Source: Macrostomum lignano (lineage: Eukaryota). Taken from it: 64,000 nt of DNA. Shown here piece after piece: positions 7,281-58,800 of this stretch. The notes below the pieces were generated by a model. It worked only from the letters and a program-made list of their open reading frames with translations, did no database searches and was not told where the DNA came from. Position 1 is the stretch's first letter, and each line of letters begins with the position of its first letter. A program made the position numbers and the translations under genes. Location of the stretch: contig NIVC01000475.1 in NCBI GenBank assembly GCA_002269645.1, positions 310,001 to 374,000 on the forward strand, written 5' to 3'.

Positions 7281-8247
7281 TCGGACCAAGGGTTGTGGCG
7301 CAAGAGCCAGAATCAGCGGTAGCTCGTACAGACCAATTCAAAAACAGACTGAGAGAAAAGAGAAGTGTAACTCATCAAGAGATTCTAGGGATTTTGATCC
7401 ATCAGATTAGATTCTGGGTACTCGTAAAACAGAGAGGCAGTTTCCTAAGGTGCTCCGGAAGTACACAATACACTAGCAGAGTACAGTGAAGGCCATCTAG
7501 CTGACCGACCGATTGTCAGGTGAAAATTGTCTGGCTGTGTACACTGAAATAATTGTACTGTACACTGTACAGAGATGCGAGAGCTAGGTGAGGGCAGAGT
7601 GGCTGAGAACACTTCAGACTGTTACTAGGCAGTCTATAAACTCAAACCAGAGGCTCTGAATGCGCCAGTTTTCTTAGAACTCCGGAGTTACAAAAGACAG
7701 GCGAGTCAATTCTCTCAAAAGCTACTAAGAAAGGAAATTCCACTAAAATAATAATGACCACGTCGAGTGCGGAGTCGTCCCAGCAGAAAACGACATGGGA
7801 GGACCCCGGTACAAAGGTAACTTTTTTGCCGATCTCTGTCGTGTGGGGCAAAAGTGCAGCTGTGAGGAATTATTGCTTTGTACAACATAGCCTGCACTAA
7901 GGAGTGAGTAGGGGGGCTGCCAGATTGGGACAAGGCAAGATCGAAGAAGAAATTAGGGGAGAAATTGCATTTCTGCTGGAGCTCACAGATGAGAGAGAGG
8001 GGGGAGACAGTGAGCGAAATGAGGGAAGTCCGGCAGTCCAAAACGGTCTTCACGGCCAAGGCGACCCAAGACCAGCAGCTTGGAGTTTAGCAACTTCTCA
8101 CCAGCTCCCTTGTTTAGACTGCTGTAGGCTGATTCTGTTTGTTTATTTTTCACATATTTTAATCAAGTTATCATCATTTCCGTTTGATAAAATCATATAT
8201 TGTAAACATGCTTTCAAATTTTTGGTCCGAATAAATTCTGAACTCGT

Positions 8248-9438
8248 GAGCCTTGGCATCTCAGCAATTCCCCCATGAGCCTTGGCATCTCAGCAATTCC
8301 CCCATGAGCCTTGGCATCTCAGCAACTCCCCCATGAGCCTTGGCATCTCAGCAATTCCCCCATGAGCATTGGCATCTCAGCAATTCCCCCATGAGCCTTG
8401 GCATCTCAGCAACTCCCCCATGAGCCTTGGCATCTCAGCAATTCCCCCATGAGCCTTGGCATCTCAGCAATTCCCCTCGAGAGCCTTGGCATCTCAGAAA
8501 TTTCCCCCGTGAGGCAATGGCATCTCAGCAATTCCCTCCGTGAGCCTTGGCATCTCAGCAATTCCCCCATGAGCCTTGGCATCTCAGCAACTCCCCCATG
8601 AGCCTTGGCATCTCAGCAATTCCCCCATGAGCCTTGGCATCTCAGCAATTCCCCCATGAGCCTTGGCATCTCAGCAATTCCCCCATGAGCCTTGGCATCT
8701 CAGCAATTCCCCCATGAGCCTTGGCATCTCAGCAATTCCCCCATGAGCCTTGGCATTTCAGCAATTCCCCCATGAGCCTTGGCATCTCAGCAATTCCCCC
8801 AGTGAGCCTTGGCATCTCAGCAATTCCCCCCAGTGAGCATTGGCATCTCAGCAATTCCCCTCGAGAGCCTTGGCATCTCAGAAATTTCCTGCGTGAGCAT
8901 TGGCAGCTCAGAAATTTTCCCCGTGAGGCAATGGCATCTCAGCAATTCCCCCAGTGAGCCTTGGCATCTCAGCAATTCCCCTCGAGAGCATTGGTATCTC
9001 AGCAATTCCCCTCGAGAGCCTTGGCATATCAGAAATTCCCCTCGAGAGCATTGGCATCTCAGAAATTTCCCCCTCGAGAGCATTGGTATCTCAGCAATTC
9101 CCCTCGAGAGCATTGGTATCTCAGCAACTCCCCTCGAGAGCATTAGCATCTCAGCAATTCCCTTCGAGAGCATTGGCATCTCAGCAATTCCCCTCGAGAG
9201 CCTTGGCATCTCAGCAATTCCCCTCAAGAGCATTGGCATCTTAGCAATTCCCCTCGAGAGCATTGGTATCTCAGCAATTCCCCTCGAGAGCATTGGTATC
9301 TCAGCAATTCCCCTCGAGAGCATTGGCATCTCAGCAATCCCCTCGAGAGCATTGGCATCTCAGCAATTCCCTTCGAGAGCATTGGCATCTCAGCAATTCC
9401 CCTCGAGAGCATTGGCATCTCAGCAATTCCCCCAGTGA
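8248..9438. repeat. Minisatellite, 29-bp unit GAGCCTTGGCATCTCAGCAATTCCCCCAT, grading into a CCCTCGAGAGCATTGG variant
   Basis: Direct tandem copies with polar change of variant type along the array. Confidence 0.95.
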
Positions 9439-10094
9439 GCCATCATGACCTGCCTATCTTATTAGTGTAACCTGAGCAAGTGCAGTCAGCTCACTCAATG
9501 GAGACTCACAGGAATTGATGCCTGCGCAGCTGGGGAGCCGCTACTCCAGGCGGCTGGCTCTAGGCCTCCTTGCCAGCAAGCCGTCCCCAAATGTGCGAGA
9601 AATTCATTTCACCACTTCTGCACTCGGCCGGGGGTCCCTTGGTACCCTCTTTCAGCAGCTAAGCAGATCACAGCTTGCCCACTGGCTACACACCACTCTT
9701 CTACTAAAAGAGCAGCCATTCTGCTTTGCTGCCAGCAGGAAATTGCACGAACCGCCCTCTCCTCTTTCACAGAGCAGACGATTAGGCCGCCTGATTGCGG
9801 AGAAGTGTTTTAGAAATTCTTGAAAATCGTTTTATCTAACGATGATTAGAGTTTTTTGCCATTTATTGTACATTCTACTGAAGCTCAATCAGTAAGTAGG
9901 CTGGTGCGTCTGTAGTGATTAAAACTATTTTAGCCAAGTAGTTTGTCTAATTATCCTATGACATAATTTTCAGACTCAAAGAATAAAGTTCTATGGCTAA
10001 TCTTGGGTTTTTTTAATGCTCTCACTAATGAGAACATGTACCTTAATGTTCGGACTTCCGATAGAAATGCTTTAAAAATGCCTCCAAGATTCCA

Positions 10095-10195
10095 AGATTC
10101 CAATTCAGCCCCAAGTTAATGTGACTGCACTTGGAATCGAGCCTGGGCCGCTGGCACATCAGAGCGCCGCGCTGGACCTCTGGGCTACGGCCCCC
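10095..10195 (-). mobile_element. tRNA-derived SINE head, copy 1
   Basis: Minus strand reads GGGGCCGTAGCCCAGAGG...GGCTCGATTCCAAGTGCAGTCAC, with Pol III A-box-like and B-box-like motifs; similar copies at 25213-25315 and 33992-34075. Confidence 0.75.
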
Positions 10196-10209
10196 ATCCC
10201 ATTACCCAC

Positions 10210-10700
10210 AATCCGATGACTCATAATCCAATGACTCATCATCCAATGACTCATCATCTAATGAACTCATCATCCAAAGACTCATCATCCAATGACTCAT
10301 CATCTAATGAACTCATCATCCAAAGATTCATCATCCAATGACCCATCATCCAATGAACTCATCATCCAAAGACTCATCATCCAATGACTCATCATCTAAT
10401 GAACTCATCATCCAAAGACTCATCATCCAATGACTCATCATCCAATGAACTCATCATCCAAAGACTCATCATCCAATGACCCGTCATCCAATGACTCGTA
10501 AGCCAATGACTCATCATCCAATGACTCATCATCTAATGAACTCATCATCCAAAGATTCATCATCCAATGACCCATCATCCAAAGACTCATCATCCAATGA
10601 CTCATCATCCAATGACTCATCATCCAATGATCCATCATCCAATGACTCGTAAGCCAATGACTCGTAATCCAATGACTCATAATCTAATGACTCATAATCA
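10210..10700. repeat. Minisatellite based on 15-bp AATGACTCATCATCC
   Basis: Tandem copies, many containing TGACTCA. Confidence 0.92.
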
Positions 10701-10807
10701 AATTATTCATAAACCAGTGACTCATAATCACCAAATAGCAGCTACTTGGTTAAGAAAAAGTTGACTCAGACTTCAACCCAGCCTCCGAACCCTCCACCAT
10801 CACACAG

Positions 10808-11331
10808 ATGGCCAAAAGACTGGCCGAGCTGACAGTCGCTGAGAACTACTCCCAGCTCAGGCGCCTGGCAACTACCGGTAACTGCCGGTGTCGAACACGA
10901 AACGAGGGCCGCACGCCGCTAATGCTGGCAGCCCAAGTCGGCCAGGCGACCTCCTGGCGCTACGCGAAATGCATCGACCTGCTGTTGGACCGAGGCGCCA
11001 GCGCACGCGCGACGGACAAGGCCACGGGGGACACCGCGGCACACTTGGCCGCTCGAACTGGCAACCTCCGCCTGCTGTCAGCGCTGCCCTACGAAGACTC
11101 CAGCGGTAGTCCGGTGAAATTTGCCGTCAACGGAGAAGGTCGAACGCCGCTGATGGAGGCGGCGGAGGCTGGCAGCTGGGAGTGCGCGCGGCACCTGCTG
11201 CACCTGCTGCGGCAGCGACGGCGAAGGGAGAAGAGAAAGTCGTTGCTGAACCTCAAGGATAAAAAAGGCTGCACAGCTGCCGACTTGGCCGAGGCGGCGG
11301 GACACCCGGAGCTGGCTGAGGTCATCCGGAT
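10808..11331 (+). CDS. Ankyrin-repeat exon (about 4 repeats)
   Basis: GRTPLMLAA, GDTAAHLAA, GRTPLMEAA and GCTAADLA motifs; preceded by CACAG acceptor and followed by GTGAGT donor. Confidence 0.9.
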
Positions 11332-12314
11332 GTGAGTTCACGGAGTCTGTGTGAATGGGGGAGTCTGTGTGAATGGGGGAGTCTGTGTGAATGGGGGAGT
11401 CTGTGTGAATGAGAGAGTCTGTGTAAACGAGGGAGTCTGTGTGAATGAGGGTGTTTGTGTGAATGAGGGAGTCTGTGTGAATGAGGATTCTGTGTGAATG
11501 AGGAGTCTGTGTGAATTTCGAAGTCTGTGTGAATGCAGGAGTTTGCGTGAATGAGGGAGTCTGCGTGAATGAGTGAGTTGGTTGATAAAAAATCTGATAA
11601 TTTACCTGTACATAAGTAATCATTCTAAAGCTAGTACTGAAAAAAGAAAGAACTGATTTGCATTGCAGAGAAATTCGCGGTCTCACATTCAAGGTGAGTC
11701 ATTCGTTTTATTCTTTGATAAATGCACTTTAAGGTTAAAGGTTCAGCAGTAAAAAAATGGATTGCATTTATCCAATTTGCAAGTAGAACTCAGTTTCTAT
11801 TCCAGATTCTCTGTTTTTAGAAGTCCTTGAAAAAACTGAATGGACCGCATTTATATTATTATTTATATTTCCATTATTTCGAACCCCCTAAGGACCCCCA
11901 AAGGGAGTGTACATGCCTAACGATGGGAGAAAGTGAAATAAAGTCAAGACTAAACTTTATTTTGGCTCAAAAGCACGAAAAACTTTACCGGCTAAAAAGC
12001 CTGCTTTATATTAAACTATTTGTTATTGATCGGCATACCCACCGCACCCCCCAACCCGCGCTAGCAAGTACATGCAGAGAGAGAGAGAGAGCAACACAAC
12101 TCAACCTAGCCCCTCCCCAGCGCGCACGCAGGCCAAGCTATCACATCCCTCCATGCCAAGACAAAAGCAACAGAACTTGCAACAAAAAAAGAAAAGAAAA
12201 ACCCAACACCCAAAAAACTGTCAGTCACTGTCAGATCAAGTTCACTCGTAGGTCAGTCGATCCGGTGCCCTTGTAGTCCTCTCCGAACGCCGCAGCATCG
12301 GGGGCGGCAGCAGC

Positions 12315-12345
<31 letters not shown>

Positions 12346-15300
12346 GTGGCGCTTCAGACGTTGTCACCGACGGAGTCAGAAGCTGTGGCGCCGCCCCACC
12401 TGACTGAGCCGATCCTGCCGCTTGCTCAGGTGAGATTGTCGCCGGCACCAGGTGGTCGGCATGCCGCCGCACGATGCGCTCGTCGGGCAGGCGGCACTCG
12501 TAGGACAGCGGCCCGGTCTGGCGGCTCACGGAGGCCGGCGCCCACTTCTCCGGACCGTTGAAGTCGCGCACCAGGACACCGTCGCCTTTTTCGAAGTTGC
12601 GATCCCTGGCTCGCAGGTCGTGGTACTCCTTTTGCGAGTCCTGGCTGCGCCTGACTGTAGCCGAGACATCGGGCCGCACAATGTCTAGAAGCGTCCGCAG
12701 CTGCCTGCCCATCATCAGGTCAGCAGGAACCGAGCTAGCCGAAACTGCAGGGACGCCGGCCGCCCCTTCGCCAGGGCCGCCTTCACCGTCTGGACCGCTC
12801 GCTCGGCCAATCCGTTGGACGATGGATGATATGGAGCCACTTTGATGTGCCGGATGCCGTTACTGGCCAAGAAGTTGTTCATCTCTTGGCTCACGAAATT
12901 CAGACCGTTGTCGCTCACTACGACCTCAGGCAATCCCAGCTGACTGAAAGTCCTTCTTAGCCGATCGATGGTGGTAGCACTGGTGGCGGACTCGCAAATG
13001 TGGACTTCAATCCATTTCGAATGAGCGTCCACCAGTACTAACAGCATTTTTCCCTCGACTGGTCCAGCGTAGTCCATGTGGATCCGGGACCACGGCTTGT
13101 CCGGCCACGGCCACGGCTGCAGGAGGGCTGGCGGCGGGCAGTTCTGATGACGCTGGCACTCGCCGCAGTTCTGCGACAGCTGCTCGATGTCCCGGTCCAA
13201 TCCCGGCCACCAGAAATATCCTCGGGCCAGAGACTTCATCCTAGAAGCTCCTTGGTGGCTCTGATGTAGACAATCGAGCAGTGCTTGTCGACCCTGAACC
13301 GGCACAATCACACGGTTGCCCCACAGCAGGCAGCCGTCCTCCAAGCTCAGCTCTGCCGCCCTAACTGCGTACGGCTGCAGTTCCGCATCCAGCCGAAGAC
13401 GCTCCGGCCATCCACCTTGCACGAGCCGCAGCACTCGACTGAGCAGCGGGTCCCTTCTTGTCCAGCCGCGAACCTGAGCAGCCGTCACGGGTCCCTCATT
13501 GAACGCATCGATGAGCAGCACTACCTCAGCTGGTGACGGCGTCTCCACCGACTTCGTCGGCAGCGGCAGCCGACTCAGAGCGTCAGCCCGCAGTAGCGAA
13601 GTTCCCTTGCGATACTGCAGTCGATACGAGTAGTTCGAAAGCAGCAGAGCCCAACGCTGGATCCTAGCTGAAGCCAGTGGTGGAATGGCCTTGCTCTCGT
13701 GTAGCAGGCCCAGTAGCGGCTTGTGGTCGCTCTTGAGCTCAAAGGTTTTGCCATAGAGGTAGGCGTGGAAGTGCTTGATCCCAAAAATGATCGCCAGGGC
13801 TTCCTTCTCTGTCTGCGAATAGTTCCTCTCGGCGTCGGCGAGCGATCGGGACGCGAAGGCAATCGGCCTTTCAAGGCCATCAATCCGGTGGCAGATGACG
13901 GCCCCGACCCCGTATGGCGAACTATCTCACTCCAGAATCACCTCCTTTTTGACGTCGAAATGGACAAGCGCCTGCGAGCTCAATAGCAGCTCCTTGCTGC
14001 GCCGGAAAGCATCGGACTGCGCTTCGCCCCATCGCCAGACAGTTCCTTTCTCGAGAAGCCGGTGCAGAGGAGCCAGAACGCTGGACAGGTTCGGCAGAAA
14101 CCGGCCGTAATAGTTGAGGAGGCCCAAGAAACTGCGCAACTGCGTGATGTCCTTTGGCATCGGCGCGTCAACGATCGCGTTGACTTTGTCACTTATCGGA
14201 TGTAGGCCCTGGGCGTCAATCCGATGCCCCAAATAGGTCACCGAATTCTCCATGAAGCGGCATTTGTCAAGCCGGCACTTCAGCCCGGCATCCTTCAGGC
14301 GCTGCAGGACGGTCTCCAGATTCTCGAGGTGCTCAGCGTCATCGGCGCCGGTCACCAACACGTCATCAATAAAGGTTGCCGTATGCTGTGCACCATGCAG
14401 CAGGCCGTCCATGGTTCTCTGGAAGATTCCAACTGCTGGGGAGATTCCAAACGGTAGCCTTGTATACCTCAGCAAACCCTTCGAGGTGTTGATGGTGCAC
14501 AGGCGCTGAGACTCTTCGTCGAGCGGAAGCTGCATGTATGCCTGGCTGAGGTCCAGCTTGGTGAACTTTTGGCCGCCGGTGAGCTTGGCGAACAACTCCT
14601 CAATCCTTGGCAGCGGGTAGCAATCCATATCCACGTCCTGGTTTACCGTGCACTTGAAATCTGCGCAGACTCTGACGGAGCCGTCCGACTTCAGCACCGG
14701 CACGATTGGGGACGCATACTCCGAATCGGAGACCGGCCGCAGAATGCCCTGCTGGATCTTCCGCTCGAGCTGCTCTTCCACTTTGGACTTCAAAGCGAAA
14801 GGTACCTGCCGCGCCTTTATGAACTTGGGTCGCGCCCACTCGCAGTTTCAGAGGTTCACCCGTGTAGCAGCCGAGGCCACTCGAGAAAACGGGGCTGAAC
14901 CTCTCTAGCAACTTCTGCACTTGCTGATCCTTTGGAGCCGACGCTTCGGGCAGCTGCTTGACGCTCCCCCAATTCAACGGCAGCACAGCCAGCCAGTTCC
15001 TACCGATGAGGCTGGAACCGGATCCAGATACCACTAGAAGAGGAAGAAGCTGCTTGGCTTTACCTGGAATCTCTGCAGACACGCTGATCTGACCGAGTAC
15101 GCTGACCGGCTGTCCGCAGTAGTTCCGCAGTCGAATCGGGGTCCGCTCGAGCTCAGGAGCCCCGCCCAACAGGTCGTGATAGGCTCTAGCCGATATCAGC
15201 GATACCGCCGCGCCCGTGTCGATCTCCATCTGGCAGGACACTCCGTTAAGCAGGACCGTGGTGATGTACGGCGGTACCTTGGCAGCTGCACTGGGCAAGG

Positions 15301-18300
15301 TGTTCAGGGAGCCGCAGTCTTGGCTTTCCTCCTCCACAGCGGCGACTTGCGACCGCGACTCAGCTCCAGCCGAATCCGCGCCTCCTCGACAGGCTGCAGC
15401 GGTGTGCCCCATCTTGCCGCACTTGAAACAGGCCTTCTTCATGAATGGGCACTTCGCCGCCAGGTGTTTCGCTGACAGACACCTGTAGCACCTTTTCGCA
15501 GGTCGCTGAGTCGCTACCGCATTGGTCTGGCCGACTTGGTCTACCGATGCTGCCGAGGCGGCTTGCGGGGTTCCTGAGGACGAGCCCTTGACCAAGTTGC
15601 AGCCCTTGGTTGCCAGCTCCACCGCCTGGGAGATCGCCAGTGCTCTGTCCAGGTCCAACTCTGTCTCGGACAGGAGTCTGCGCTGTATGCGATCATCCTG
15701 GATGCCAAGCACCAGACGATCTCTCAGCATGGTGCTCGAGCTGTTACCGAAGTTGCAGTGGACAGCCAAACGCCGCAGTGCCGCCAGGAAGTCGGCCACG
15801 GACTCCGAGCTCTCTCGAACGCGCTGGTAGAAGTGGAACCTTTGCACGATCTCTGACGGCTTTGGGTCCCAGTAATCGTCAAGCTTTTTGCAGATGTTAG
15901 CGAAGGAAGCCTCTGAAGGCTTAACTGGGGCCAGAAGACCGGTGACAAGCCTATAGGTGTCCTTGCCGCACACGCTGAGGAATACCGCTCGCTTCTTCTC
16001 TTCGCTTTCGATTTCGTTTGCAATGAACACTTGTTCAATGCGCTCCTTGTATTGCGACCAGTCCTCCGTCTCAGGCTCAAACGGCCCTATGCTACACAGT
16101 GGCCCAGTGGCCATCCTCGTCGCCAGTGAAATAAAGTCAAGAAAAAACTTTATTTTGGCTCAAAAGCACGAAAAACTTTACCGGCTAAAAAGCCTGCTTT
16201 ATAGCTCGTATTAAACTATTTGTTATTGATCGGCATACCCACCGCACCCCCCAACCCGCGCTAGCAAGTACATGCAGAGAGAGAGAGAGAGCAACACAAC
16301 TCAACCTAGCCCCTCCCCAGCGCGCACGCAGGCCAAGCTATCACAGAAAGTCTGGACCGCTGTAAACCCTGTGTGAGCCTCTGCTTGCTTTTAAGGCAAC
16401 CCAGCCCGCATCCCGCAGGAGAAGCAGGAGGCCCAGGAGCTGATGAGGCTGGCCAATCGAGCACCGCCCGCCGAATTTCTCCGCCTCGCCACTCGCGTCA
16501 ACTGCGACTGGCCGCACCTGCAGTGGTTTCACACCTGCCTGAGCTGCCTGGCTCGCCGCAGCGCCGAGTCGTCCGCCTGCCTCGACTCGCTGCGCCAGCT
16601 GGTCGATGAGCTCCGCGCGGATGCCACCTCCAGCAACACGGCGGGTTGGACGGCGCTGCACGCGGCTGCCGGCGCCGGGGCCACCGAGGCGGTCCGGCTG
16701 CTGGTCGATGCCGGAGCCTGGGTGAACTGTCCCGACGGCGACGGCGGCACCGCTTTGATGGAGGCCGCAGCTGCTGGCAAAGTGGAGACTGCTCAAGTGC
16801 TGCTCGAGTTGGGCGCCAATTGGCAGCTGAAAAATGCAAAGGGCGAGACGGCGGAGAGCATCGCTGCCAAGGGAGGGAATGCTGAGCTGATGAAGCTGAT
16901 GCAGAGGTGATGCTGGGTTTGAGGTGGAGTTGAGGTGGAGCTGAGGTAGATTAGAGGTAGATTAGAGGTAGATTAAAGGTAGATTAGAGATAGATTAGAG
17001 GTAGATTAGAGGTAGATTAAAGGTAGATTAAAGGTAGATTAAAGGTAGATTAAAGGTAGATTAGAGGTAGATTAGAGGTAGATTAGAGTTAGAGTTAAGG
17101 CGGAGTTGAGGTGGAGTTGAGGTGGAGTTAAAGTGGAGTTGTGGTAGATTAACTATTGTTTGTATGATTTTTACAAGCAGTTCTGTATGCTTTTAATATT
17201 CATTGATAGTATTTTTCTCATTGCAGCTTCCAAGGCAAAGACTTCTTCAGTACTGATGTTGAGCCCAGGTGAATTGACACAAATTTCGACGATCATATCT
17301 ACGACGCTTTTGCACAGGTTATCTCTATTCTAAAAAGGAAACATTAAAAAAACAATTTCAGCCAATCAGCTCAGCTTGAGTCGGACGATATCGCCTCTGG
17401 GGAGGAGGATGGCGAGTAAGTTTTGCATCCTAATAAAAAGTTTGTTTGTGGACAGTCAATGGTAAAAGGCCAAAAAGATCGAAAGTTGTCAGTGTCTGTT
17501 ATTAAGAGTAAGTTAAAGCGCGGAATGGGTTTTTGCCATAGACAAAATCGGTCGAGATTATACACAGTAAACAGACGGTAACGGCTGAAGAAGGTGAAAT
17601 ATTTATCAATTAGTGTAAGTGCCCTTCTGCTTTGGTTGTCCATGCAAAAAATGTGATAGAAACCTCCAAGATTACTTCCTAAGATAGATTTGGAAAACTG
17701 ATTATTTTCAATCGTTTGTTTTTCTTCATTCAAGTTTCAATCGGGAAGTCACTGCCGATTCTTTCAATCAAGGCGAGCCTCATGTAAACACTGGTTTGCC
17801 CTCGAGCCGCAGTTCACGGCTTCGGTGAGTGATCGGAGTCAACAGACTCCTGAGACAGGAATGATGAAGAGAACTTGATTTTGAATAAGCCTTTTTCTGG
17901 AAAGGCATTGCCAGATCTGACCAGCAGACTCACTCCGATGAGGACAAACCCTCAAGGATCAGAGAGATGATAAAGTCAGGACTCAGTGCTCAGGGGTCAG
18001 TGGAATGGGCAAGACTGGAATGCTGTAGACATAAGTGAAACTCGATTCGCCATCAGTTCAATGGCGAACTCACCTGCCATGCAGGTACCGAGCAGCCGAC
18101 TTCTACCCAGTGACGGATCCGCAGGGCATCTGTTTGGTCATCAACATCAACAAATATTCGCCAAGCTCGAAATTCGAATGCCGCGACGGGTCGGAGCTGG
18201 ACGTGCAGCGAATTCGACAACTCTTCGAGAGGCTGCGCTTCCGCGTGCTGGTGCGACAGGACCTGAGCGTCAACGGGGTGCTCAACTGCCTGCACGAGGT

Positions 18301-19296
18301 GGCCAACAACCAGGCTGAGCTGCAAAACCACGGCTGCTTCGTCTGCTTCCTGATGGCTCACGGCACTGCGGACTCCATCTACGGCTGCGACGGGAGACCG
18401 CTGGAGATCAAGTGAGGGAGCTCTAGAGATCAAGTGGTTGTTGACTAATTTCCTGGCCGCTGGGTTGATTTATGATTGATTGATTGACTGATTACTGATT
18501 CTGTGGGTGATGGGGGGCTGATCCACTGATGATTAGTTTATGAATGGGGTTCTTAGGCCACTAGCGCTGTAAGACTGCTGGTTGTTGGCTGTTAGTTGGT
18601 GGTTAACGGTGGCTGTTCCTTAATGTTTAGTGGCTGTTAGTTGGTGGTTAACGGTGGCTGTTCGTTAATGCTTGGTGGCGGATAATTAGTGGTTAATGGT
18701 AAATGGATAATGACCGATGATTAGTATTTAATAATAGATTATTGATAGGTTGATTTTAAGATAATTTTATCATCGGATTTACCCATCGATGACCCCGAAT
18801 CTTCGTGCCCAGATACCTCGCCGCCCGATTCCAAGCGAACATCTGCAGCGGGCTGGAGCACAAGCCGAAGATCTTCTTTGTCCAGGCCTGCAGAGGTGGC
18901 CGCACCGAAGCCACGGGTGGCGCCGGCGCCGGCTCGCAGCTGCTCCGCCAGGTGCAGCCGGTGAGCACGGACTCAACTAGCGGGCCTGCGCCAGTGAAAG
19001 ACCCGCTGTTCTGCCCGACCGAGAGCGACTTTCTGTTCTGCTACGCCAACACCGAGACCGGCGCGGCCTACCGGGAGCCTCACCGCGGCTCCATCTTCAT
19101 CCAGACTCTGTGCACCGTGCTGGAGCGCGAGTACCAACGAGAGCACCTGGTGGACATCATGACCCAGGTGAATCGGCGGGTCAAGGAGAATCCGGTGCGG
19201 TGCCCCGGCCGGCAACTGTTCTACCACTCGGTGCCGGAGATGCGCTCCCAGCTGTCCAAGAAGGTGTCGCTGGATCCGAGCTGGGCTGCCAAGTAA
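10808..19296 (+). CDS. Predicted 9-exon ankyrin-repeat caspase, 704 aa
   Basis: Exons 10808-11331, 11669-11693, 16419-16906, 17227-17268, 17362-17415, 17735-17824, 17915-17995, 18085-18411, 18813-19296. All introns are GT-AG, phases are compatible, total 2115 nt with no internal stop. Joining of the ankyrin and caspase halves is inferred. Confidence 0.6.
11340..11575. repeat. Intronic minisatellite, 18-bp GAGTCTGTGTGAATGGGG
   Basis: Tandem copies starting just after the splice donor. Confidence 0.88.
11934..12145 (-). repeat. 3' LTR (212 bp)
   Basis: Matches 16127-16345 except 2 adjacent substitutions and a 7-bp indel; short PPT GGAGGGA abuts it at 12146-12152. Confidence 0.95.
12242..13929 (-). 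pseudogene. pol RNase H and integrase region with lesions
   Basis: After a nonsense codon at 13927-13929 the frame continues DSSPYGVGAV...DHKPL (RNase H) into HQSHQG...CGEC, MDYAGP, SDNG, GLAERAVQ (integrase). A deletion near 12718 removes the conserved YRxTPH segment and shifts the C-terminal tail. Confidence 0.9.
13927..14793 (-). CDS. pol: Reverse transcriptase domain of the Gypsy element
   Basis: DLSQAY, LPFG, FIDDVLV, YLGH, LRSFLG motifs. Confidence 0.95.
   Translation of the reverse strand: MKSKVEEQLERKIQQGILRPVSDSEYASPIVPVLKSDGSVRVCADFKCTVNQDVDMDCYPLPRIEELFAKLTGGQKFTKLDLSQAYMQLPLDEESQRLCTINTSKGLLRYTRLPFGISPAVGIFQRTMDGLLHGAQHTATFIDDVLVTGADDAEHLENLETVLQRLKDAGLKCRLDKCRFMENSVTYLGHRIDAQGLHPISDKVNAIVDAPMPKDITQLRSFLGLLNYYGRFLPNLSSVLAPLHRLLEKGTVWRWGEAQSDAFRRSKELLLSSQALVHFDVKKEVILE
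14600..16114 (-). CDS. gag: gag-protease ORF of the Gypsy element; frameshifted relative to RT near 14840
   Basis: CYRCLSAKHLAAKC and CFKCGKMGHTAAAC knuckles; MEIDTGAAVSLI aspartic protease. Confidence 0.93.
   Translation of the reverse strand: MATGPLCSIGPFEPETEDWSQYKERIEQVFIANEIESEEKKRAVFLSVCGKDTYRLVTGLLAPVKPSEASFANICKKLDDYWDPKPSEIVQRFHFYQRVRESSESVADFLAALRRLAVHCNFGNSSSTMLRDRLVLGIQDDRIQRRLLSETELDLDRALAISQAVELATKGCNLVKGSSSGTPQAASAASVDQVGQTNAVATQRPAKRCYRCLSAKHLAAKCPFMKKACFKCGKMGHTAAACRGGADSAGAESRSQVAAVEEESQDCGSLNTLPSAAAKVPPYITTVLLNGVSCQMEIDTGAAVSLISARAYHDLLGGAPELERTPIRLRNYCGQPVSVLGQISVSAEIPGKAKQLLPLLVVSGSGSSLIGRNWLAVLPLNWGSVKQLPEASAPKDQQVQKLLERFSPVFSSGLGCYTGEPLKLRVGATQVHKGAAGTFRFEVQSGRAARAEDPAGHSAAGLRFGVCVPNRAGAEVGRLRQSLRRFQVHGKPGRGYGLLPAAKD
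16111..16125 (-). promoter_or_regulatory. Primer-binding site complementary to tRNA-Ser(GCU) 3' end
   Basis: Minus strand TGGCGACGAGGATGG one base after the 5' LTR. It matches the eukaryotic tRNA-Ser(GCU) end CCATCCTCGTCG-CCA, recalled from the known sequence. Confidence 0.8.
16127..16345 (-). repeat. 5' LTR (219 bp)
   Basis: Direct repeat of 11934-12145; contains a (GA)n run. Confidence 0.95.
16419..16906 (+). CDS. Ankyrin-repeat exon (about 3 repeats)
   Basis: GWTALHAAA, GGTALMEAA, GETAESIAA; acceptor CCCGCAG and donor GTGATG. Confidence 0.88.
16920..17150. repeat. Intronic minisatellite, 11-bp GAGGTAGATTA
   Basis: Tandem copies flanked by GAGGTGGAGTT variants. Confidence 0.88.
18085..19296 (+). 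CDS. Caspase catalytic domain (peptidase C14A, large and small subunits) on two exons, 18085-18411 and 18813-19296
   Basis: GICLVININ, RDGSELD, FLMAHG (catalytic His), KPKIFFVQACRG (catalytic Cys), ESDFLFCYAN, AYR...GSIFIQTL; AATAAA at about 19379. Confidence 0.93.
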
Positions 19297-19959
19297 TCAG
19301 TTGATAGCAGAGAACCCTGCGCGTCACTGATAACTTGAATTTTTGTATTTTCAATCAGCACAAGTTTCTATGCAGAGAAATAAAACAAAATTTAAAGTAT
19401 TAAAAAAACACACATCTTGTAGGCGCCAAGAATCAACTAATTTGATTGGTTAATGAATAATTTATTTTTAAAATGTCTGTAAACTTATATTTTATCCATT
19501 TAAAATCGTGCGTGAAAAGTGCTAATAAAAATTTGATAATACAGCTAATAAAGAGGCGCTTTCGCTTCAAACAGAATCAAGGGGAAGAATTAAATTAAGA
19601 CTGCATAAGACAGTCCTACAGGCGCTAACTGTTAACTTCTGCGGGTTCAAAGCTCCTTCAGTTTTAGTGAAATACCAACTACAAGAGTTGAGAGTTGAGA
19701 GTTGGGTGCTGAAAGCTAACGAGAACAGTAGATGGGGTCAGGTTTGACATCTGCTTGCCAGCTGGTGCCATCAGCTGCGCGCAAGCCGCACTGCAAGAGC
19801 AAAGCGCTGTTGAAACTGGTGTGCTCAGGCAGTTTCGGCAAGCGTTTGTAAGTTTATAATAAGCTAATTTGTTCAGAAAATAAACAGGCCCCAGTGCGAG
19901 ACAAAAGTCGGAGTCTAGAAAAGTTTCTACAGCTTCTCTGCTCTAGCTTATCCGCCTCA

Positions 19960-22196
19960 TCACTTCTTGGCCTCGAGCTCGTTGAGCTTGTTGACGGTGT
20001 CGATCATGTTCTGCACCAGCTCGTACTCGGGCCGGCCGATGCGGTGGAAGTTGGAGATGTCGCAGGTGTCCACAATCTCCGTGTGCTCGCCGTGGGTGCC
20101 GCGCACCTGGCAGCCGAGGCTGCGCGCCAGCTCGTCCAGCTTCTTCAGCCCCATGGTCTTGAACAGGTGCGGCAGCACAATGTGCACGCTGCCGCGCAGG
20201 CCGGTGCCCAGGTTAGACGGGCAGCAGGTGATCATGCCCAGGTGCTCGGTGCAGAGGAAGGCCTGCGCGTTGCCCGTGATCTTCTTAATGCCATCCTCGA
20301 TGGCCTTCACGCCGCGGCAGAGGCGCTCGAAGACGGCCTTGACGTCGCCGCCCTGCTGCATGCTGATGATGCGAATGTGGTCGCCCTCGTTCAGCCACAG
20401 CAGGAAGGTCTTGTCCTTGTTGTGGAAGATGCCGCGGCCGGCGGGCCAGAAGCTGAAATTCGGGGTGAGGAAAATGAGATTCATTCTCCAGCTCATCCGG
20501 CTCAGCGACGTTTGACAAAACTACTTTAAGTGGCAAAATACGAGTGTAGACTTCAAAAAATTCCAGCTATTAACTATGGATACTTAAATCAAGTAGTTTT
20601 TTAGTTTTCAGTATATCTACGGTAAAACAGATGATTAGATTGAAGCATTTTGCAAATCTCCGAAATTTAAGGCAGATATGCATAAATTCATTCCACCGAT
20701 GAGTTGCGCTCAAGCACACAAATACGTACGAACGTACACAGGCAGACGCACAGACAGTGTACTCGCTCCGTGCATTAGGGGGTTGGCCGGTCCGCCAAGA
20801 CCCAGGCCACTTTTCATACACAAGGCCCAAATTTATGTGACTACTAGCTGCGCACACAGCACAGCCTCTTGGCGCGAGAGTCAGATGTGTCACCGCTTGA
20901 TGAAAGGTTGCCCAAACCAATATTTTCAGTCTGTTCAGATCTTTTATTTAAACTAATTTCAACTGCGTGGTAATGAAACCTAAGCACCTGTTAGCTGGCA
21001 AGCGTTGGTCAAAAACTCTGCAAGTCAGCTTACGCGTGGTAGCCGGAAGCGACCTGGAACCGGTCTCCAGGCTTGAACAGGAAGTGGTCGTCAACCAGCT
21101 GCTGGCGTTGCTCCTTGGTGAGGCTGGCTAGGGAGTAGTAGGTTCCCGCCAGGTCGCCGGTCAGCGTCTCGAATACGCGCTTCATCAGGTCCTCGATGGC
21201 GAGGCGCGACTCCTTGGTGCCGGCCGTGTTCAGCGGGAAGCCGAACAGGTTGCGGGCAACTCGGATTCGCGTCGACTTGATGTTGGACTTCTCGGCAAAG
21301 TCGCCGCGCAGCTTGCCGGCGTCCATGTCGGTCACGTGCTTCCGGTCGGGCCCGTAGCCGCCGTGGTACTTCTCAATGACGGGGTCGAACAGGGCCGCGA
21401 AGTCCGTGTAGCTCTCCAGGTCGCCGGCGTGGCAGCCGACCAGCGAGTCCTCGTTGACGAAGCCGGTGTTGATGGCCTGCGATGGAAAGGTTGCAGACTA
21501 GAGGATTCTGGATCACCGACTCATGAAGCCTGCGTCAAGGGCACCACATCATCATACCTACATGCACCAGGACACCAAGAAACAGGGGTAACCGCCAAGA
21601 CACAGAGGGCCCACCAAAGAAACAGAGGCGCCCACCAAAACACAGAGACACCCATCAAGAGACAGGGGCGCCCAACAAAGAGACAGGGGCGCCCAACAAA
21701 GAGACAGGGGCGCCCAACAAAGAGACAGGGGCGCCCAACAAAGAGACAGGGGCGCCCAACAAAGAGACAGGGGCGCCCAACAAAGAGACAGGGGCGCCCA
21801 ACAAAGAGACAGGGGCGCCCAACAAAGAGACAGGGGCGCCCAACAAAGAGACAGGGGCGCCCAACAAAGAGACAGGGCCACCCATCATAACACAGAGGAG
21901 GATGCACATCATTCAAAGCTTCATACCTTCCTGAGAGTCCACTCGCCAGTCTTGGTTTTGTGATTCTTGAGATCTTTCCAGATCTTCTCGGTCAGGCACT
22001 GGCCCATGATGCTCTTGTTGTTAGGCGAGATCTTGGGGAACTCCTCGCCCAGAAGGCGGGGGTCCATGACAACTGTGTATTCCTCTGCGTTCGGGTGATA
22101 GTTTAAAATTTAGCATTGGAGTAAAACTTCAAAGTTGAATGGGTTAAGGGTACACAAAACAGTTAAGGTATATTAATTATGCTTACCTGCGGCCAT
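19960..22196 (-). CDS. AK: Phosphagen kinase, arginine kinase-like, 367 aa, 4 exons
   Basis: Exons 22196-22187, 22084-21927, 21476-21034, 20452-19960 join in frame (1104 nt). Motifs: [43 protein letters not shown]. Substrate is not determinable from sequence alone. Confidence 0.92.
21650..21885. repeat. Intronic minisatellite, 21-bp AAAGAGACAGGGGCGCCCAAC
   Basis: About 10 near-perfect copies in kinase intron 2. Confidence 0.95.
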
Positions 22197-52800: not shown

Positions 52801-55800
52801 GCCAATTTTTTTGCCAGGTTTGAGCCAAATTTGAGCCAAGTTTGAGCCAAGTTTGAGACAGGTTTGAGACAGGTTTGAGTCAGGTTTAAGACAGGTTTGA
52901 GTCAGGTTTAGGACAGGTTTGAGTCAGGTTTGAGACAGGTTTGAGCCAAGTTTGAGACAGGTTTGAGTCAGGTTTGAGTCAGGTTTGAGACAGGTTTGAG
53001 CCAAGTTTGAGACAGGTTTGAGTCAGGTTTGAGTCAGGTTTGAGTCAGGTTTGAGTCAAGTTTGAGACAGGTTTGAGTCAAGGTTTGAGCCAGGTTTGAG
53101 CCAAGTTTGAGCCAGGTTTGAGCCAAGTTTGAGACACGTTTGAGCCATTTTTTTGCCAGATTTGAGCCACGTTTGAGCCAAGTTGGAGCCAAGTTTGAGA
53201 CACGTTTGAGCCAATTTTTTTGCCAGGTTTGAGCCAAGTTTGAGCCAAGTTTGAGTCAGGTTTGAGACAGGTTTGAGCCAAGTTTGAGACAGGTTTGAGT
53301 CAGGTTTGAGTCAGGTTTGAGTCAGGTTTGAGACAGGTTTGAGCCAAGTTTGAGACAGGTTTGAGTCAGGTTTGAGCTAGGTTTGAGCCAAGTTTGAGCC
53401 AAGTTTGAGACACGTTTGAGCCAAGTTTGAGCCAGGTTTGAGCCAAGTTTGAGACACGTTTGAGTCAGGTTTGAGCCAAGTTTGAGACACGTTTGAGACA
53501 GGTTTGAGTCAGGTTTGAGTCAGGTTTGAGACAGGTTTGAGCCAAGTTTGAGACAGGTTTGAGTCAGGTTTGAGTCAGGTTTGAGTCAGGTTTGAGTCAA
53601 GTTTGAGACAGGTTTGAGTCAAGATTTGAGCCAGGTTTGAGCCAAGTTTGAGCCAGGTTTGAGCCAAGTTTGAGACACGTTTGAGCCATTTTTTTGCCAG
53701 ATTTGAGCCAAGTTTGAGCCAAGTTTAAGCCAAGTTTGAGACACGTTTGAGAAAGGTTTGAGACAGGTTTGAGTCGGGTTTAAGACAGGTTTGAGTCAGG
53801 TTTAGGACAGGTTTGAGTCAGGTTTGAGACAGGTTTGAGCCAAGTTTGAGACAGGTTTGAGTCAGGTTTGAGTCAGGTTTGAGTCAGGTTTGAGACAGGT
53901 TTGAGCCAAGTTTGAGACAGGTTTGAGTCAGGTTTGAGCTAGGTTTAGGACAGGTTTGAGCCAAGTTTGAGACAGGTTTGAGTCAGGTTTGAGTCAGGTT
54001 TGAGACAGGTTTGAGTCAGGTTTGAGACAGGTTTGAGTCAGGTTTGAGCTAGGTTTGAGCCAAGTTTGAGCCAAGTTTGAGACACGTTTGAGCCAAGTTT
54101 GAGCCAGGTTTGAGTCAGGTTTGAGTCAGGTTTGAGACAGGTTTGAGCCAAGTTTGAGACAGGTTTGAGTCAGGTTTGAGCTAGGTTTAGGACAGGTTTG
54201 AGCCAAGTTTGAGACAGGTTTGAGTCAGGTTTGAGTCAGGTTTGAGACAGGTTTGAGTCAGGTTTGAGTCAGATTTAGGACAGGTTTGAGACAAGTTTGA
54301 GACAAGTTTAAGCCAGGTTTGAGACAAGTTTGAGGCAAGTTTGAGACAGGTTTGAGACAGGTTTGAGTCAGGTTTGAGACAGGTTTGAGTCAGGTTTAGG
54401 ACAGGTTTGAGTCAGGTTTGAGACAGGTTTGAGCCAAGTTTGAGACAGGTTTGAGTCAGGTTTGAGTCAGGTTTGAGTCAGGTTTGAGACAGGTTTGAGC
54501 CAAGTTTGAGACAGGTTTGAGTCAGGTTTGAGCTAGGTTTAGGACAGGTTTGAGCCAAGTTTGAGACAGGTTTGAGTCAGGTTTGAGTCAGGTTTGAGAC
54601 AGGTTTGAGTCAGGTTTGAGCTAGGTTTGAGCCAAGTTTGAGCCAAGTTTGAGACACGTTTGAGCCAAGTTTGAGCCAGGTTTGAGCCAAGTTTGAGCCA
54701 AGTTTGAGCCAGGTTTGAGCCAAGTTTGAGACACGTTTGAGTCAGGTTTGAGTCAGGTTTGAGACAGGTTTGAGCCAAGTTTGAGACAGGTTTGAGTCAG
54801 GTTTGAGTCAGGTTTGAGTCAGGTTTGAGCCAAGTTTGAGTCAGGTTTGAGCCAGGTTTGAGCCAAATTTGAGCCAAGTTTGAGCCAAGTTTGAGACAGG
54901 TTTGAGTCAGGTTTAGGACACGTTTGAGTCAGGTTTGAGTCAGATTTAGGACAGTTTGAGACAAGTTTGATACAAGTTTAAGCCAGGTTTGAGACAAGTT
55001 TGAGGCAAGTTTGAGACAGGTTTGAGACAGGTTTGAGTCAGGTTTGAGACAGGTTTGAGTCAGGTTTAGGACAGGTTTGAGTCAGGTTTGAGCCAAGTTT
55101 GAGACAGGTTTGAGACACGTTTGAGCCAAGTTTGAGCCAGGTTTGAGCCAAGTTTGAGCCAAGTTTGAGCCAGGTTTGAGCCAAGTTTGAGCCAAGTTTG
55201 AGTCAGGTTTGAGACAGGTTTGAGCCAAGTTTGAGACAGGTTTGAGTCAGGTTTGAGTCAGGTTTGAGTCAGGTTTGAGACAGGTTTGAGCCAAGTTTGA
55301 GACAGGTTTGAGTCAGGTTTGAGCTAGGTTTGAGCCAAGTTTGAGCCAAGTTTGAGACACGTTTGAGCCAAGTTTGAGCCAGGTTTGAGCCAAATTTGAG
55401 CTAAGTTTGAGCCAAGTTTGAGACACGTTTGAGCCATTTTTTTTGCCAGGTTTGAGCCAAATTTGAGCTAAGTTTGAGCCAAGTTTGAGCCACGTTTGAG
55501 CCAGGTTTGAGCCAAATTTGAGCTAAGTTTGAGCCAAGTGTGAGACACGTTTGAGCCATTTTTTTTGCCAGGTTTGAGCCAAGTTTGAGCCAAGTTTGAG
55601 CCAAGTTTGAGACACGTTTGAGCCAAGTTTGAGCCAGGTTTGAGCCAAGTTTGAGCCAAGTTTGAGCCAGGTTTGAGCCAAGTTTGAGACACGTTTGAGT
55701 CAGGTTTGAGTCAGGTTTGAGACAGGTTTGAGTCAGGTTGTAGCCAAGTTTGAGCCAAGTTTGAGCCAGGTTTGAGCCAAGTTTGAGACACGTTTGAGTC

Positions 55801-58800
55801 AGGTTTGAGTCAGGTTTGAGACAGGTTTGAGTCAGGTTGTAGCCAAGTTTGAGCCAAGTTTGAGCCAGGTTTGAGCCAAGTTTGAGACAGGTTTGAGCCA
55901 AATTTGAGCTAAGTTTGAGCCAAGTTTGAGACACGTTTGAGCCATTTTTTTGCCAGGTTTGAGCCAAATTTGAGCTAAGTTTGAGCCAAGTTTGAGCCAA
56001 GTTTGAGCCAGGTTTGAGCCAAATTTGAGCTAAGTTTGAGCCAAGTTTGAGACACGTTTGAGCCATTTTTTTTGCCAGGTTTGAGCCAAGTTTGAGCCAA
56101 GTTTGAGCCAAGTTTGAGACACGTTTGAGCCAAGTTTGAGCCAGGTTTGAGCCAAGTTTGAGCCAAGTTTGAGCCAGGTTTGAGCCAAGTTTGAGACACG
56201 TTTGAGTCAGGTTTGAGTCAGGTTTGAGACAGGTTTGAGTCAGGTTGTAGCCAAGTTTGAGCCAAGTTTGAGCCAGGTTTGAGCCAAGTTTGAGACACGT
56301 TTGAGTCAGGTTTGAGTCAGGTTTGAGACAGGTTTGAGTCAGGTTGTAGCCAAGTTTGAGCCAAGTTTGAGCCAGGTTTGAGCCAAGTTTGAGACAGGTT
56401 TGAGCCAAATTTGAGCTAAGTTTGAGCCAAGTTTGAGACACGTTTGAGCCATTTTTTTGCCAGGTTTGAGCCAAATTTGAGCTAAGTTTGAGCCAAGTTT
56501 GAGCCAAGTTTGAGCCAGGTTTGAGCCAAATTTGAGCTAAGTTTGAGCCAAGTTTGAGACACGTTTGAGCCATTTTTTTTGCCAGGTTTGAGCCAAGTTT
56601 GAGCCAAGTTTGAGCCAAGTTTGAGACACGTTTGAGCCAAGTTTGAGCCAGGTTTGAGCCAAGTTTGAGCCAAGTTTGAGCCAGGTTTGAGCCAAGTTTG
56701 AGACACGTTTGAGTCAGGTTTGAGTCAGGTTTGAGACAGGTTTGAGTCAGGTTGTAGCCAAGTTTGAGCCAAGTTTGAGCCAGGTTTGAGCCAAGTTTGA
56801 GACACGTTTGAGTCAGGTTTGAGTCAGGTTTGAGACAGGTTTGAGTCAGGTTGTAGCCAAGTTTGAGCCAAGTTTGAGCCAGGTTTGAGCCAAGTTTGAG
56901 ACACGTTTGAGTCAGGTTTGAGTCAGGTTTGAGACAGGTTTGAGTCAGGTTGTAGCCAAGTTTGAGCCAAGTTTGAGCCAGGTTTGAGCCAAGTTTGAGA
57001 CAGGTTTGAGCCAAATTTGAGCTAAGTTTGAGCCAAGTTTGAGACACGTTTGAGCCATTTTTTTTGCCAGGTTTGAGCCAAATTTGAGCTAAGTTTGAGC
57101 CAAGTTTGAGCCAAGTTTGAGCCAGGTTTGAGCCAAATTTGAGCTAAGTTTGAGCCAAGTTTGAGACACGTTTGAGCCATTTTTTTTGCCAGGTTTGAGC
57201 CAAGTTTGAGCCAAGTTTGAGCCAAGTTTGAGACACGTTTGAGCCAAGTTTGAGCCAGGTTTGAGCCAAGTTTGAGCCAAGTTTGAGCCAGGTTTGAGCC
57301 AAGTTTGAGACACGTTTGAGTCAGGTTTGAGTCAGGTTTGAGACAGGTTTGAGTCAGGTTGTAGCCAAGTTTGAGCCAAGTTTGAGCCAGGTTTGAGCCA
57401 AGTTTGAGACACGTTTGAGTCAGGTTTGAGTCAGGTTTGAGACAGGTTTGAGTCAGGTTGTAGCCAAGTTTGAGCCAAGTTTGAGCCAGGTTTGAGCCAA
57501 GTTTGAGACAGGTTTGAGCCAAATTTGAGCTAAGTTTGAGCCAAGTTTGAGACACGTTTGAGCCATTTTTTTTGCCAGGTTTGAGCCAAATTTGAGCTAA
57601 GTTTGAGCCAAGTTTGAGCCAAGTTTGAGCCAGGTTTGAGCCAAATTTGAGCTAAGTTTGAGCCAAGTTTGAGACACGTTTGAGCCATTTTTTTTGCCAG
57701 GTTTGAGCCAAGTTTGAGCCAAGTTTGAGCCAAGTTTGAGACACGTTTGAGCCAAGTTTGAGCCAGGTTTGAGCCAAGTTTGAGCCAAGTTTGAGCCAGG
57801 TTTGAGCCAAGTTTGAGACACGTTTGAGTCAGGTTTGAGTCAGGTTTGAGACAGGTTTGAGTCAGGTTGTAGCCAAGTTTGAGCCAAGTTTGAGCCAGGT
57901 TTGAGCCAAGTTTGAGACACGTTTGAGTCAGGTTTGAGTCAGGTTTGAGACAGGTTTGAGTCAGGTTGTAGCCAAGTTTGAGCCAAGTTTGAGCCAGGTT
58001 TGAGCCAAGTTTGAGACACGTTTGAGTCAGGTTTGAGTCAGGTTTGAGACAGGTTTGAGTCAGGTTGTAGCCAAGTTTGAGCCAAGTTTGAGCCAGGTTT
58101 GAGCCAAGTTTGAGACAGGTTTGAGCCAAATTTGAGCTAAGTTTGAGCCAAGTTTGAGACACGTTTGAGCCATTTTTTTTGCCAGGTTTGAGCCAAATTT
58201 GAGCTAAGTTTGAGCCAAGTTTGAGCCAAGTTTGAGCCAGGTTTGAGCCAAATTTGAGCTAAGTTTGAGCCAAGTTTGAGACACGTTTGAGCCATTTTTT
58301 TTGCCAGGTTTGAGCCAAGTTTGAGCCAAGTTTGAGCCAAGTTTGAGACACGTTTGAGCCAAGTTTGAGCCAGGTTTGAGCCAAGTTTGAGCCAAGTTTG
58401 AGCCAGGTTTGAGCCAAGTTTGAGACACGTTTGAGTCAGGTTTGAGTCAGGTTTGAGACAGGTTTGAGTCAGGTTGTAGCCAAGTTTGAGCCAAGTTTGA
58501 GCCAGGTTTGAGCCAAGTTTGAGACACGTTTGAGTCAGGTTTGAGTCAGGTTTGAGACAGGTTTGAGTCAGGTTGTAGCCAAGTTTGAGCCAAGTTTGAG
58601 CCAGGTTTGAGCCAAGTTTGAGACACGTTTGAGTCAGGTTTGAGTCAGGTTTGAGACAGGTTTGAGTCAGGTTGTAGCCAAGTTTGAGCCAAGTTTGAGC
58701 CAGGTTTGAGCCAAGTTTGAGACACGTTTGAGTCAGGTTTGAGTCAGGTTTGAGACAGGTTTGAGTCAGGTTGTAGCCAAGTTTGAGCCAAGTCTCTTTC

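Follow-up and report, generated by a model that had tools for sequence, protein, structure and literature searches.

Does a caspase headed by ankyrin repeats exist as one gene in a free-living flatworm, and how might such an enzyme be activated? These questions are raised by a stretch of 64,000 nucleotides of the Macrostomum lignano genome (contig NIVC01000475.1; hereafter, the window), where the interval 10808-19296 had been described, in a sequence-only reading, as two ankyrin exons linked by four small exons to a catalytically intact caspase. Our results show that the ankyrin-caspase fusion is a genuine transcribed gene of free-living M. lignano, and that the flagged interval covers most of BOX15_Mlig009621g2, almost certainly a single nine-exon gene at 7679-19296 on the + strand. 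Its product has a ~345-aa N-terminal ankyrin module, a disordered acidic linker of ~30-60 aa and a C-terminal C14A caspase domain.

The identity of the gene was established with the GenBank protein PAA82384.1 (P0301, BOX15_Mlig009621g2, M. lignano), which is the exact translation of window exons 1 (7679-7816), 2 (10808-11331), 3 (11669-11693), 4 (16419-16906), 5 (17227-17268), 6 (17362-17415), 8 (18085-18411) and 9 (18813-19296), all on the + strand. In this annotated transcript of the locus, ankyrin and caspase exons are spliced together to encode one transcript-derived protein, which bears out the proposed single gene. The GenBank models of the M. lignano assembly are RNA-seq-guided (StringTie/TACO plus a de novo transcriptome) and not ab initio, and the gene boundaries in the annotation were drawn with trans-splicing and poly(A) evidence (PMC5730564); the linkage used here is that of an annotated assembled model and not of individual reads. 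For the gene group, we considered six annotated products, namely the 90% cluster of P0001, which is the best database match and has the ankyrin plus caspase architecture. Besides P0301, the five other products of the group, which comprise three UniRef entries and GenBank models from two further loci, also span the ankyrin and caspase parts.

The 5′ end of the gene lies before the flagged interval. The ATG at 10808, previously taken as the start, stands directly after an acceptor AG, and an extra 5′ exon (7679-7816) with an in-frame ATG precedes it. We located this exon by tblastn with the N-terminal extension of P0001, by reading the sequence and by the exact reconstruction of P0301. The annotated coding sequence is open from 7679, the GT donor of the exon lies at 7817, and the first ATG of the transcript, at 7754, is in frame and contributes 21 residues, MTTSSAESSQQKTTWEDPGTK. 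An AG at 7676-7677, just 5′ of the first exon, could be a spliced-leader acceptor. Exon 2 encodes the first ankyrin block with the family signature GSWECARHLLHL from 11171, and exon 4 encodes the connector and the second ankyrin block. Between them, the 25-nt exon 3 restores the frame and encodes part of the helical connector; the paralogue P0003 has the same small exon at this position. Exon 8 bears the part of the large subunit that includes the Arg of the S1 pocket (18182-18184) and the catalytic His (18359-18361). Exon 9 encodes the QACRG motif (Cys at 18889-18891), the disordered intersubunit loop with VSTD/S (Asp at 18970-18972) and the part of the small subunit with the second S1 Arg (19072-19074), and ends with the stop codon at 19294-19296. 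The first AATAAA 3′ of the stop, at 19379-19384 on the + strand, is a candidate polyadenylation signal. The exons have a G+C content of 63% vs. 47% for the whole window, and a tblastn scan of the 64 kb gave no further caspase or ankyrin-caspase copy.

The linker is where the gene model had to be revised. Of the four small exons of 42, 54, 90 and 81 nt proposed earlier, the 42-nt exon 5, which carries FSTD, and the acidic 54-nt exon 6 are present in all six annotated products. The 90-nt exon 7 (17735-17824, + strand, phase 2-2) is skipped in four of the six, including that of this locus, and included in two. Being skipped in some products of the gene group and included in others, it is a cassette exon, with splice sites kept in both gene copies: the window locus and a duplicate locus L001 (contig NIVC01002653.1), whose product P0001 consists of the same exons plus the 90-nt cassette. 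The 81-nt segment (17915-17995, + strand) is found in none of the six. Moreover, in L001 it has GG where the acceptor AG should be, its body is interrupted by a 128-bp insertion and its donor region is deleted; the remaining linker exons are intact there, splice sites included. The intron holding this segment is the least conserved of all, with 70% identity between the copies and many gaps. Because it is absent from the annotated products and disrupted in the duplicate, the segment is probably intron, and we rejected it as a coding exon. The model rebuilt with all four exons (2115 nt, 704 codons) is indeed stop-free, with GT-AG at every border, as had been stated, but the annotated exon set likely gives 668 aa without the cassette and 698 aa with it. 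Two of the four proposed linker exons, one a cassette and one unsupported, are thus missing from the transcript of the locus, which is a lesson for annotation.

The revision also changes the set of candidate Asp cleavage sites. FSTD in the linker and VSTD/S between the subunits are constitutive, the latter lying in exon 9; VTAD appears only with the 90-nt cassette; EDGD reads EDGE without the cassette, its Asp requiring the 90-nt exon; and THSD falls inside the unsupported 81-nt segment. Hence, the length and the Asp content of the linker are set by alternative splicing.

If the fusion resulted only from threading compatible frames, the locus would hold an ankyrin-only gene with a separate short caspase gene next to it. 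The genome contains ~400-aa ankyrin-only relatives (P0009, P0012 and P0014) and a caspase-only entry of 272 aa (P0121), and the locus itself offers an intronic AATAAA at 17432, where an ankyrin-only transcript might end, and an in-frame ATG at 17967, where a separate caspase might start. However, none of the six annotated products supports either event, and the ATG lies in the 81-nt segment that is disrupted in L001. Both the transcript-derived protein of this locus and the five further products span the two parts, as do four or five further paralogue groups; comparison of the window with L001 shows that exons 5 and 6 (42 and 54 nt) have kept their sequence and splice sites between introns that diverge; and P0003, only 41% identical, retains the exon order and the nine-exon plan, its three small linker exons measuring 42, 63 and 51 nt and the 42-nt one standing where exon 5 does. 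The transcript model of the locus, the products of the gene group and the paralogue exon order largely refute the two-gene structure, and we consider it exceedingly improbable.

We next consider whether the caspase part is an intact enzyme domain. In the 704-aa model, Pfam found Peptidase_C14 (PF00656) over residues 449-695, covering profile positions 2-232 of 233 (150.2 bits vs. a cut-off of 21.4, E 1e-43), and ankyrin models over residues ~30-345 (Ank_2 E 2e-32, Ank E 3e-25 and further Ank models). Among PDB sequences, human caspase-7 was the top match by phmmer (E 7e-34, ~30% identity), with caspase-3 also ahead of caspase-8 (E 1e-28). The alignment with caspase-7 clearly showed that the S1 Arg (ecRdg), the His (aHg vs. 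SHG), the Gln and Cys (QaCrg) and the second S1 Arg (ayR) are all present, each of the residues named in the sequence-only reading having its human counterpart. The domain, judged by these alignments, has a complete catalytic dyad and an Asp-binding Arg/Gln/Arg S1 pocket. As Pfam, phmmer and the residue alignment agree, the core ankyrin-caspase observation is correct and far beyond chance. An AlphaFold2 model was computed for P0001 (99% identical to the window protein) with 21 aligned relatives. Its mean predicted local distance difference test score (pLDDT) was 79.7; the ankyrin region and the caspase fold were confident, and two stretches of P0001 fell below 50, residues 399-452 (the linker) and 592-628 (the intersubunit loop). 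In this disordered loop, VSTD/S is a candidate processing site. In Foldseek, the caspase part matched procaspase-7, -3, -9 and -8 and CED-3 at target template modelling (TM) scores of 0.82-0.91, with procaspase-7 and -3 at the top (0.85-0.91, a range that also takes in procaspase-8). Initiator caspases normally have CARD or DED prodomains; in the window protein, Pfam gave no CARD or DED match at E ≤0.01.

The ankyrin part proved to be more than a generic repeat array. The earlier count of about 7 repeats was reasonable, and in the AlphaFold2 model two ankyrin blocks, with a helical connector between them, comprise ~10 helix pairs at high pLDDT; in Foldseek, the region matches rigid DARPin-DARPin fusions. 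Over its full length, the module can be aligned with the N-terminal parts of other M. lignano caspases and, at E 1e-44 to 1e-53, with those of more than 12 protein kinases, the ~400-aa ankyrin-only proteins and an ankyrin-kinase-caspase, P0160. Since all these end-to-end relatives share the signature GSWxCxxHLLHL and come from M. lignano, the ~345-aa module is, on sequence grounds, a defined lineage-specific unit. The paralogues P0002, P0005 and P0006 begin with MGSGSS, MGSWFS and MGSAAS, which resemble N-myristoylation motifs, and the window protein begins with MTTSS, without such a motif; some members of the family may be membrane-anchored.

The duplicate locus allowed us to estimate the selection acting on the gene. 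L001 is 96% identical to the window locus. Their coding sequences differ at 31 of 2034 nt, 22 of the differences being synonymous and 9 non-synonymous, and the ratio of non-synonymous to synonymous rates (dN/dS) is 0.13 overall, 0.06 for the ankyrin part, 0.09 for the caspase part and 0.35 for the linker. These values indicate purifying selection on both domains and a less constrained linker. Most introns are 91-96% identical between the copies, the full range outside the intron with the retrotransposon described below being 70-96%. One may suspect that the gene is a decaying duplicate, a copy drifting to a pseudogene in M. lignano, a recent polyploid rich in redundant copies: duplicated blocks at ≥95% identity account for 180 Mb of its genome (PMC5730564), a 4.4-kb retrotransposon sits inside an intron, and the paralogue P0003 lost the catalytic Cys. 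Against this, the frame is open across the exons, all the catalytic residues are intact, all the splice sites are canonical, a transcript is annotated at the window locus, and synonymous changes prevail. On the dN/dS of 0.13 against the duplicate, we rejected the pseudogene reading, and decay is, in our view, highly improbable.

The gene belongs to a wide family of caspases in this worm. A HMMER profile search with the caspase domain gave 11,186 relatives, and the domain architectures were examined in the best 150, which include many M. lignano caspases with unusual N-termini: ankyrin of several kinds, ankyrin plus kinase (Mlig018903), Ras/Roc GTPase and LRAT; one architecture is kinase-caspase-ankyrin-caspase. 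Examples are P0142 (Ras/Roc), P0163/P0184 (LRAT), P0160 (ankyrin-kinase) and P0162/P0167 (kinase-caspase-ankyrin-caspase). The ankyrin plus caspase architecture recurs in four or five further M. lignano paralogue groups, one of them with the same nine-exon layout. In P0003/P0129 (BOX15_Mlig016858, locus L002), QAGRG replaces QACRG; having lost the catalytic Cys and kept the full ankyrin module and exon layout, this protein may be a pseudo-caspase. Outside M. lignano, the search that had been suggested for the same architecture found it in a monogenean and in the jellyfish Sanderia malayensis.

Caspases with an ankyrin prodomain (“ANK caspases”) are already known from flatworms, so that the novelty implied earlier for the architecture does not hold. 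Their first description was from Schistosoma (Lee et al. 2014, Trends Parasitol, as cited in PMC11463336). Krasovec et al. 2024 (Genome Biol Evol; PMC11463336) found them monophyletic and sister to DED caspases, proposed an initiator role for them, and stated that they are specific to parasitic flatworms and absent from free-living ones; for M. lignano, only a caspase with a kinase-like prodomain was mentioned, and no other unexpected flatworm prodomain was reported. GenBank already lists PAA82384.1 itself as a hypothetical protein, and the finding is therefore not new in kind. In the literature searched, we found no mention of the locus tags Mlig009621, Mlig000705, Mlig019067 and Mlig018903.

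To place the window gene among these caspases, neighbour-joining trees of the caspase domain were built with 149 sequences (100 bootstraps) and with 38 labelled sequences (500 bootstraps), a simple distance method that gave moderate support. The window gene lies in a Macrostomum-only clade (bootstrap 48-67%) together with kinase-, Ras- and LRAT-headed caspases. The monogenean ankyrin-caspase P0238 (Cichlidogyrus) and its cestode and schistosome relatives form a 100% clade, which we equate with the published ANK clade by inference. The window gene falls outside this neodermatan clade and hence probably outside the monophyletic flatworm ANK group. The clade attracts a different M. lignano ankyrin-caspase, P0199 (BOX15_Mlig019067), at a bootstrap of 78-83%; Mlig019067 is 37% identical to P0238 vs. 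30% for P0001, the near-identical duplicate of the window gene. Within the neodermatan clade, Pfam found Ank in the monogenean member only and in none of the cestode and schistosome models, which may be truncated. A search from P0238 did not confirm an ankyrin prodomain across the whole parasite clade, nor did we find specific similarity between its ankyrin module and that of the window protein. By sequence, Mlig019067 thus seems to be the M. lignano orthologue of the ANK caspase of the parasites. Its place with the parasite clade suggests that ANK caspases of this type arose before flatworms became parasitic. The several ANK-caspase genes of free-living M. lignano speak against the published claim of absence, and a free-living, early-branching carrier weakens the tie of the group to the origin of parasitism that was drawn in the survey (PMC11463336).

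How might the protein become active? In the explanation we favour, the analysis shows how the gene is built, that it is transcribed as a single unit, which folds its product has, that the catalytic residues are intact and that selection on it is purifying. To this, we add the proposal that the protein is a zymogen in which the ankyrin module would act as a recruitment and assembly prodomain, in the role that CARD or DED plays in initiator caspases. By binding a partner or itself, the module would bring caspase domains close enough to dimerise, and self-cleavage would follow at the Asp of the intersubunit loop (VSTD/S) and perhaps in the linker too. Since the same module heads kinases, ankyrin-only proteins and a kinase-caspase fusion, it might dock kinases, ankyrin-only proteins and caspases onto a common partner or onto each other. 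The earlier suggestion of an ankyrin array as a sensor or scaffold for non-canonical activation appears reasonable, and the same was put forward in PMC11463336. Recruitment is preferred because the prodomain is long and structured, and the module has spread in the way death-fold domains have in other animals. The explanation as a whole, gene structure and recruitment-driven zymogen together, has a modest balance of probability on its side; the recruitment and activation mechanism taken by itself is an analogy that we offer tentatively and that may well prove wrong.

Several points weigh against recruitment. The ankyrin-only proteins could be truncated gene models instead of adaptors, and the AlphaFold2 model informs on single domains, without inter-domain confidence for docking of the ankyrin part on the protease, as in autoinhibition. 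Furthermore, the best matches of the caspase domain are the effector caspases-7 and -3, slightly ahead of caspases-8 and -9, and because of this the enzyme might instead be of the effector type: a constitutive dimer that gains activity only once another caspase, acting upstream, has cleaved the intersubunit loop, the acidic linker or both. The ankyrin module would then serve not as an activation platform but to localise the enzyme, select substrates or inhibit in cis. The PDB and Foldseek rankings given above agree with this possibility, as does an acidic, disordered linker whose number of Asp sites is altered by a cassette exon, and designed ankyrin proteins have been reported to bind and inhibit caspases (work cited in PMC11463336). 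On the other hand, a prodomain of ~400 aa is unlike those of effector caspases, the margin between effectors and initiators is small, with caspase-9, caspase-8 and CED-3 scoring nearly equal in Foldseek, the Macrostomum clade stands apart from the caspase-3/7 set in the trees, and the published flatworm ANK caspases adjoin DED initiators (PMC11463336). We therefore regard an effector-type enzyme as unlikely, albeit a serious contender.

With recruitment by the ankyrin module retained as the preferred mechanism, the finding bears on how flatworm caspases lacking a CARD become active. FADD is reported as lost in flatworms, as are DED caspases in the parasitic ones (PMC11463336). One may speculate that the lineage-specific GSWxCxxHLLHL module took over the death-fold job in Macrostomum, wiring cell-death or immune signalling via ankyrin assembly. 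This broader idea is a long shot; if true, ankyrin-ankyrin or ankyrin-ligand contacts would replace CARD, DED and DD contacts in signalling. That one module recurs in kinases, caspases and ankyrin-only proteins points to a definite interaction network open to testing, and M. lignano, which is amenable to transgenesis and RNA interference, is a tractable organism for the study of activation by ankyrin prodomains.

The introns and surroundings of the gene have features of their own. A long terminal repeat (LTR) retrotransposon occupies 11932-16345 on the − strand within the intron 11694-16418; its LTRs (11932-12145 and 16125-16345) are 2 mismatches and a 7-bp indel apart, and its open reading frames for RVT_1, rve and Integrase_H2C2 are split over several frames, so that the element is degenerate. 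The insertion is also present in L001, where the intron (14698-19412) is 99.8% identical to that of the window, at a synonymous divergence of 4.5% between the copies; this identity might reflect gene conversion or the polishing of a repeated element during assembly. Nearly every intron of the gene contains a minisatellite (8243-9441, 10211-10729, 11342-11578, 16943-17151 and 18586-18700), with units of 30 nt (40 copies), 15 nt (34), 18 nt (13), 11 nt (14) and 45 nt (2.6); the copy numbers differ between the window and L001. Facing the 3′ end of the caspase gene in convergent orientation is a multi-exon gene of the arginine-kinase type (~19960-22000, − strand; one exon matches ATP-gua_Ptrans at E 6e-58), and the same neighbour is annotated downstream in L001. 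Far from the caspase gene, three consecutive long open reading frames (548, 177 and 210 aa) at 55401-58162 on the − strand may be another mobile element.

Human caspase-7 and -3 have prodomains of ~25 residues and are activated by upstream caspases. Their catalytic and S1 residues are identical to those of the window protein, in which, by contrast, the prodomain and linker amount to ~400 residues. This long prodomain with an interaction module is a trait of the initiator type: as in the caspase-8-type DED initiators, it is combined with a flexible linker and an Asp in the intersubunit loop. However, our neighbour-joining tree gave no supported link between the DED caspases and the window clade, and although the literature places the flatworm ANK caspases next to DED caspases (PMC11463336), the window protein has no DED. 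Within M. lignano, P0160 (BOX15_Mlig018903) shares the ~345-aa ankyrin module, including the GSW..HLLHL signature (E 1e-46), and has its caspase domain in the same Macrostomum clade, but a protein kinase domain stands between the two parts, which in the window gene are separated by no more than a short disordered linker. Outside flatworms, P0154 of the jellyfish S. malayensis also has ankyrin repeats N-terminal to a caspase, but in a tandem ankyrin-caspase-ankyrin-caspase arrangement that groups with cnidarian caspases, and the caspase of Alitta virens, likewise preceded by ankyrin repeats (PMC11463336), comes from a different phylum; both look like independent fusions. Closest in design are the published ANK caspases, which, like the window protein, place an ankyrin prodomain before the caspase in one polypeptide and have no CARD or DED, but are said to be restricted to parasites (PMC11463336), whereas the window gene comes from free-living M. 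lignano. As the window gene sits in a Macrostomum-only clade apart from the neodermatan one, it shares the architecture of the published ANK caspases but probably not their origin.

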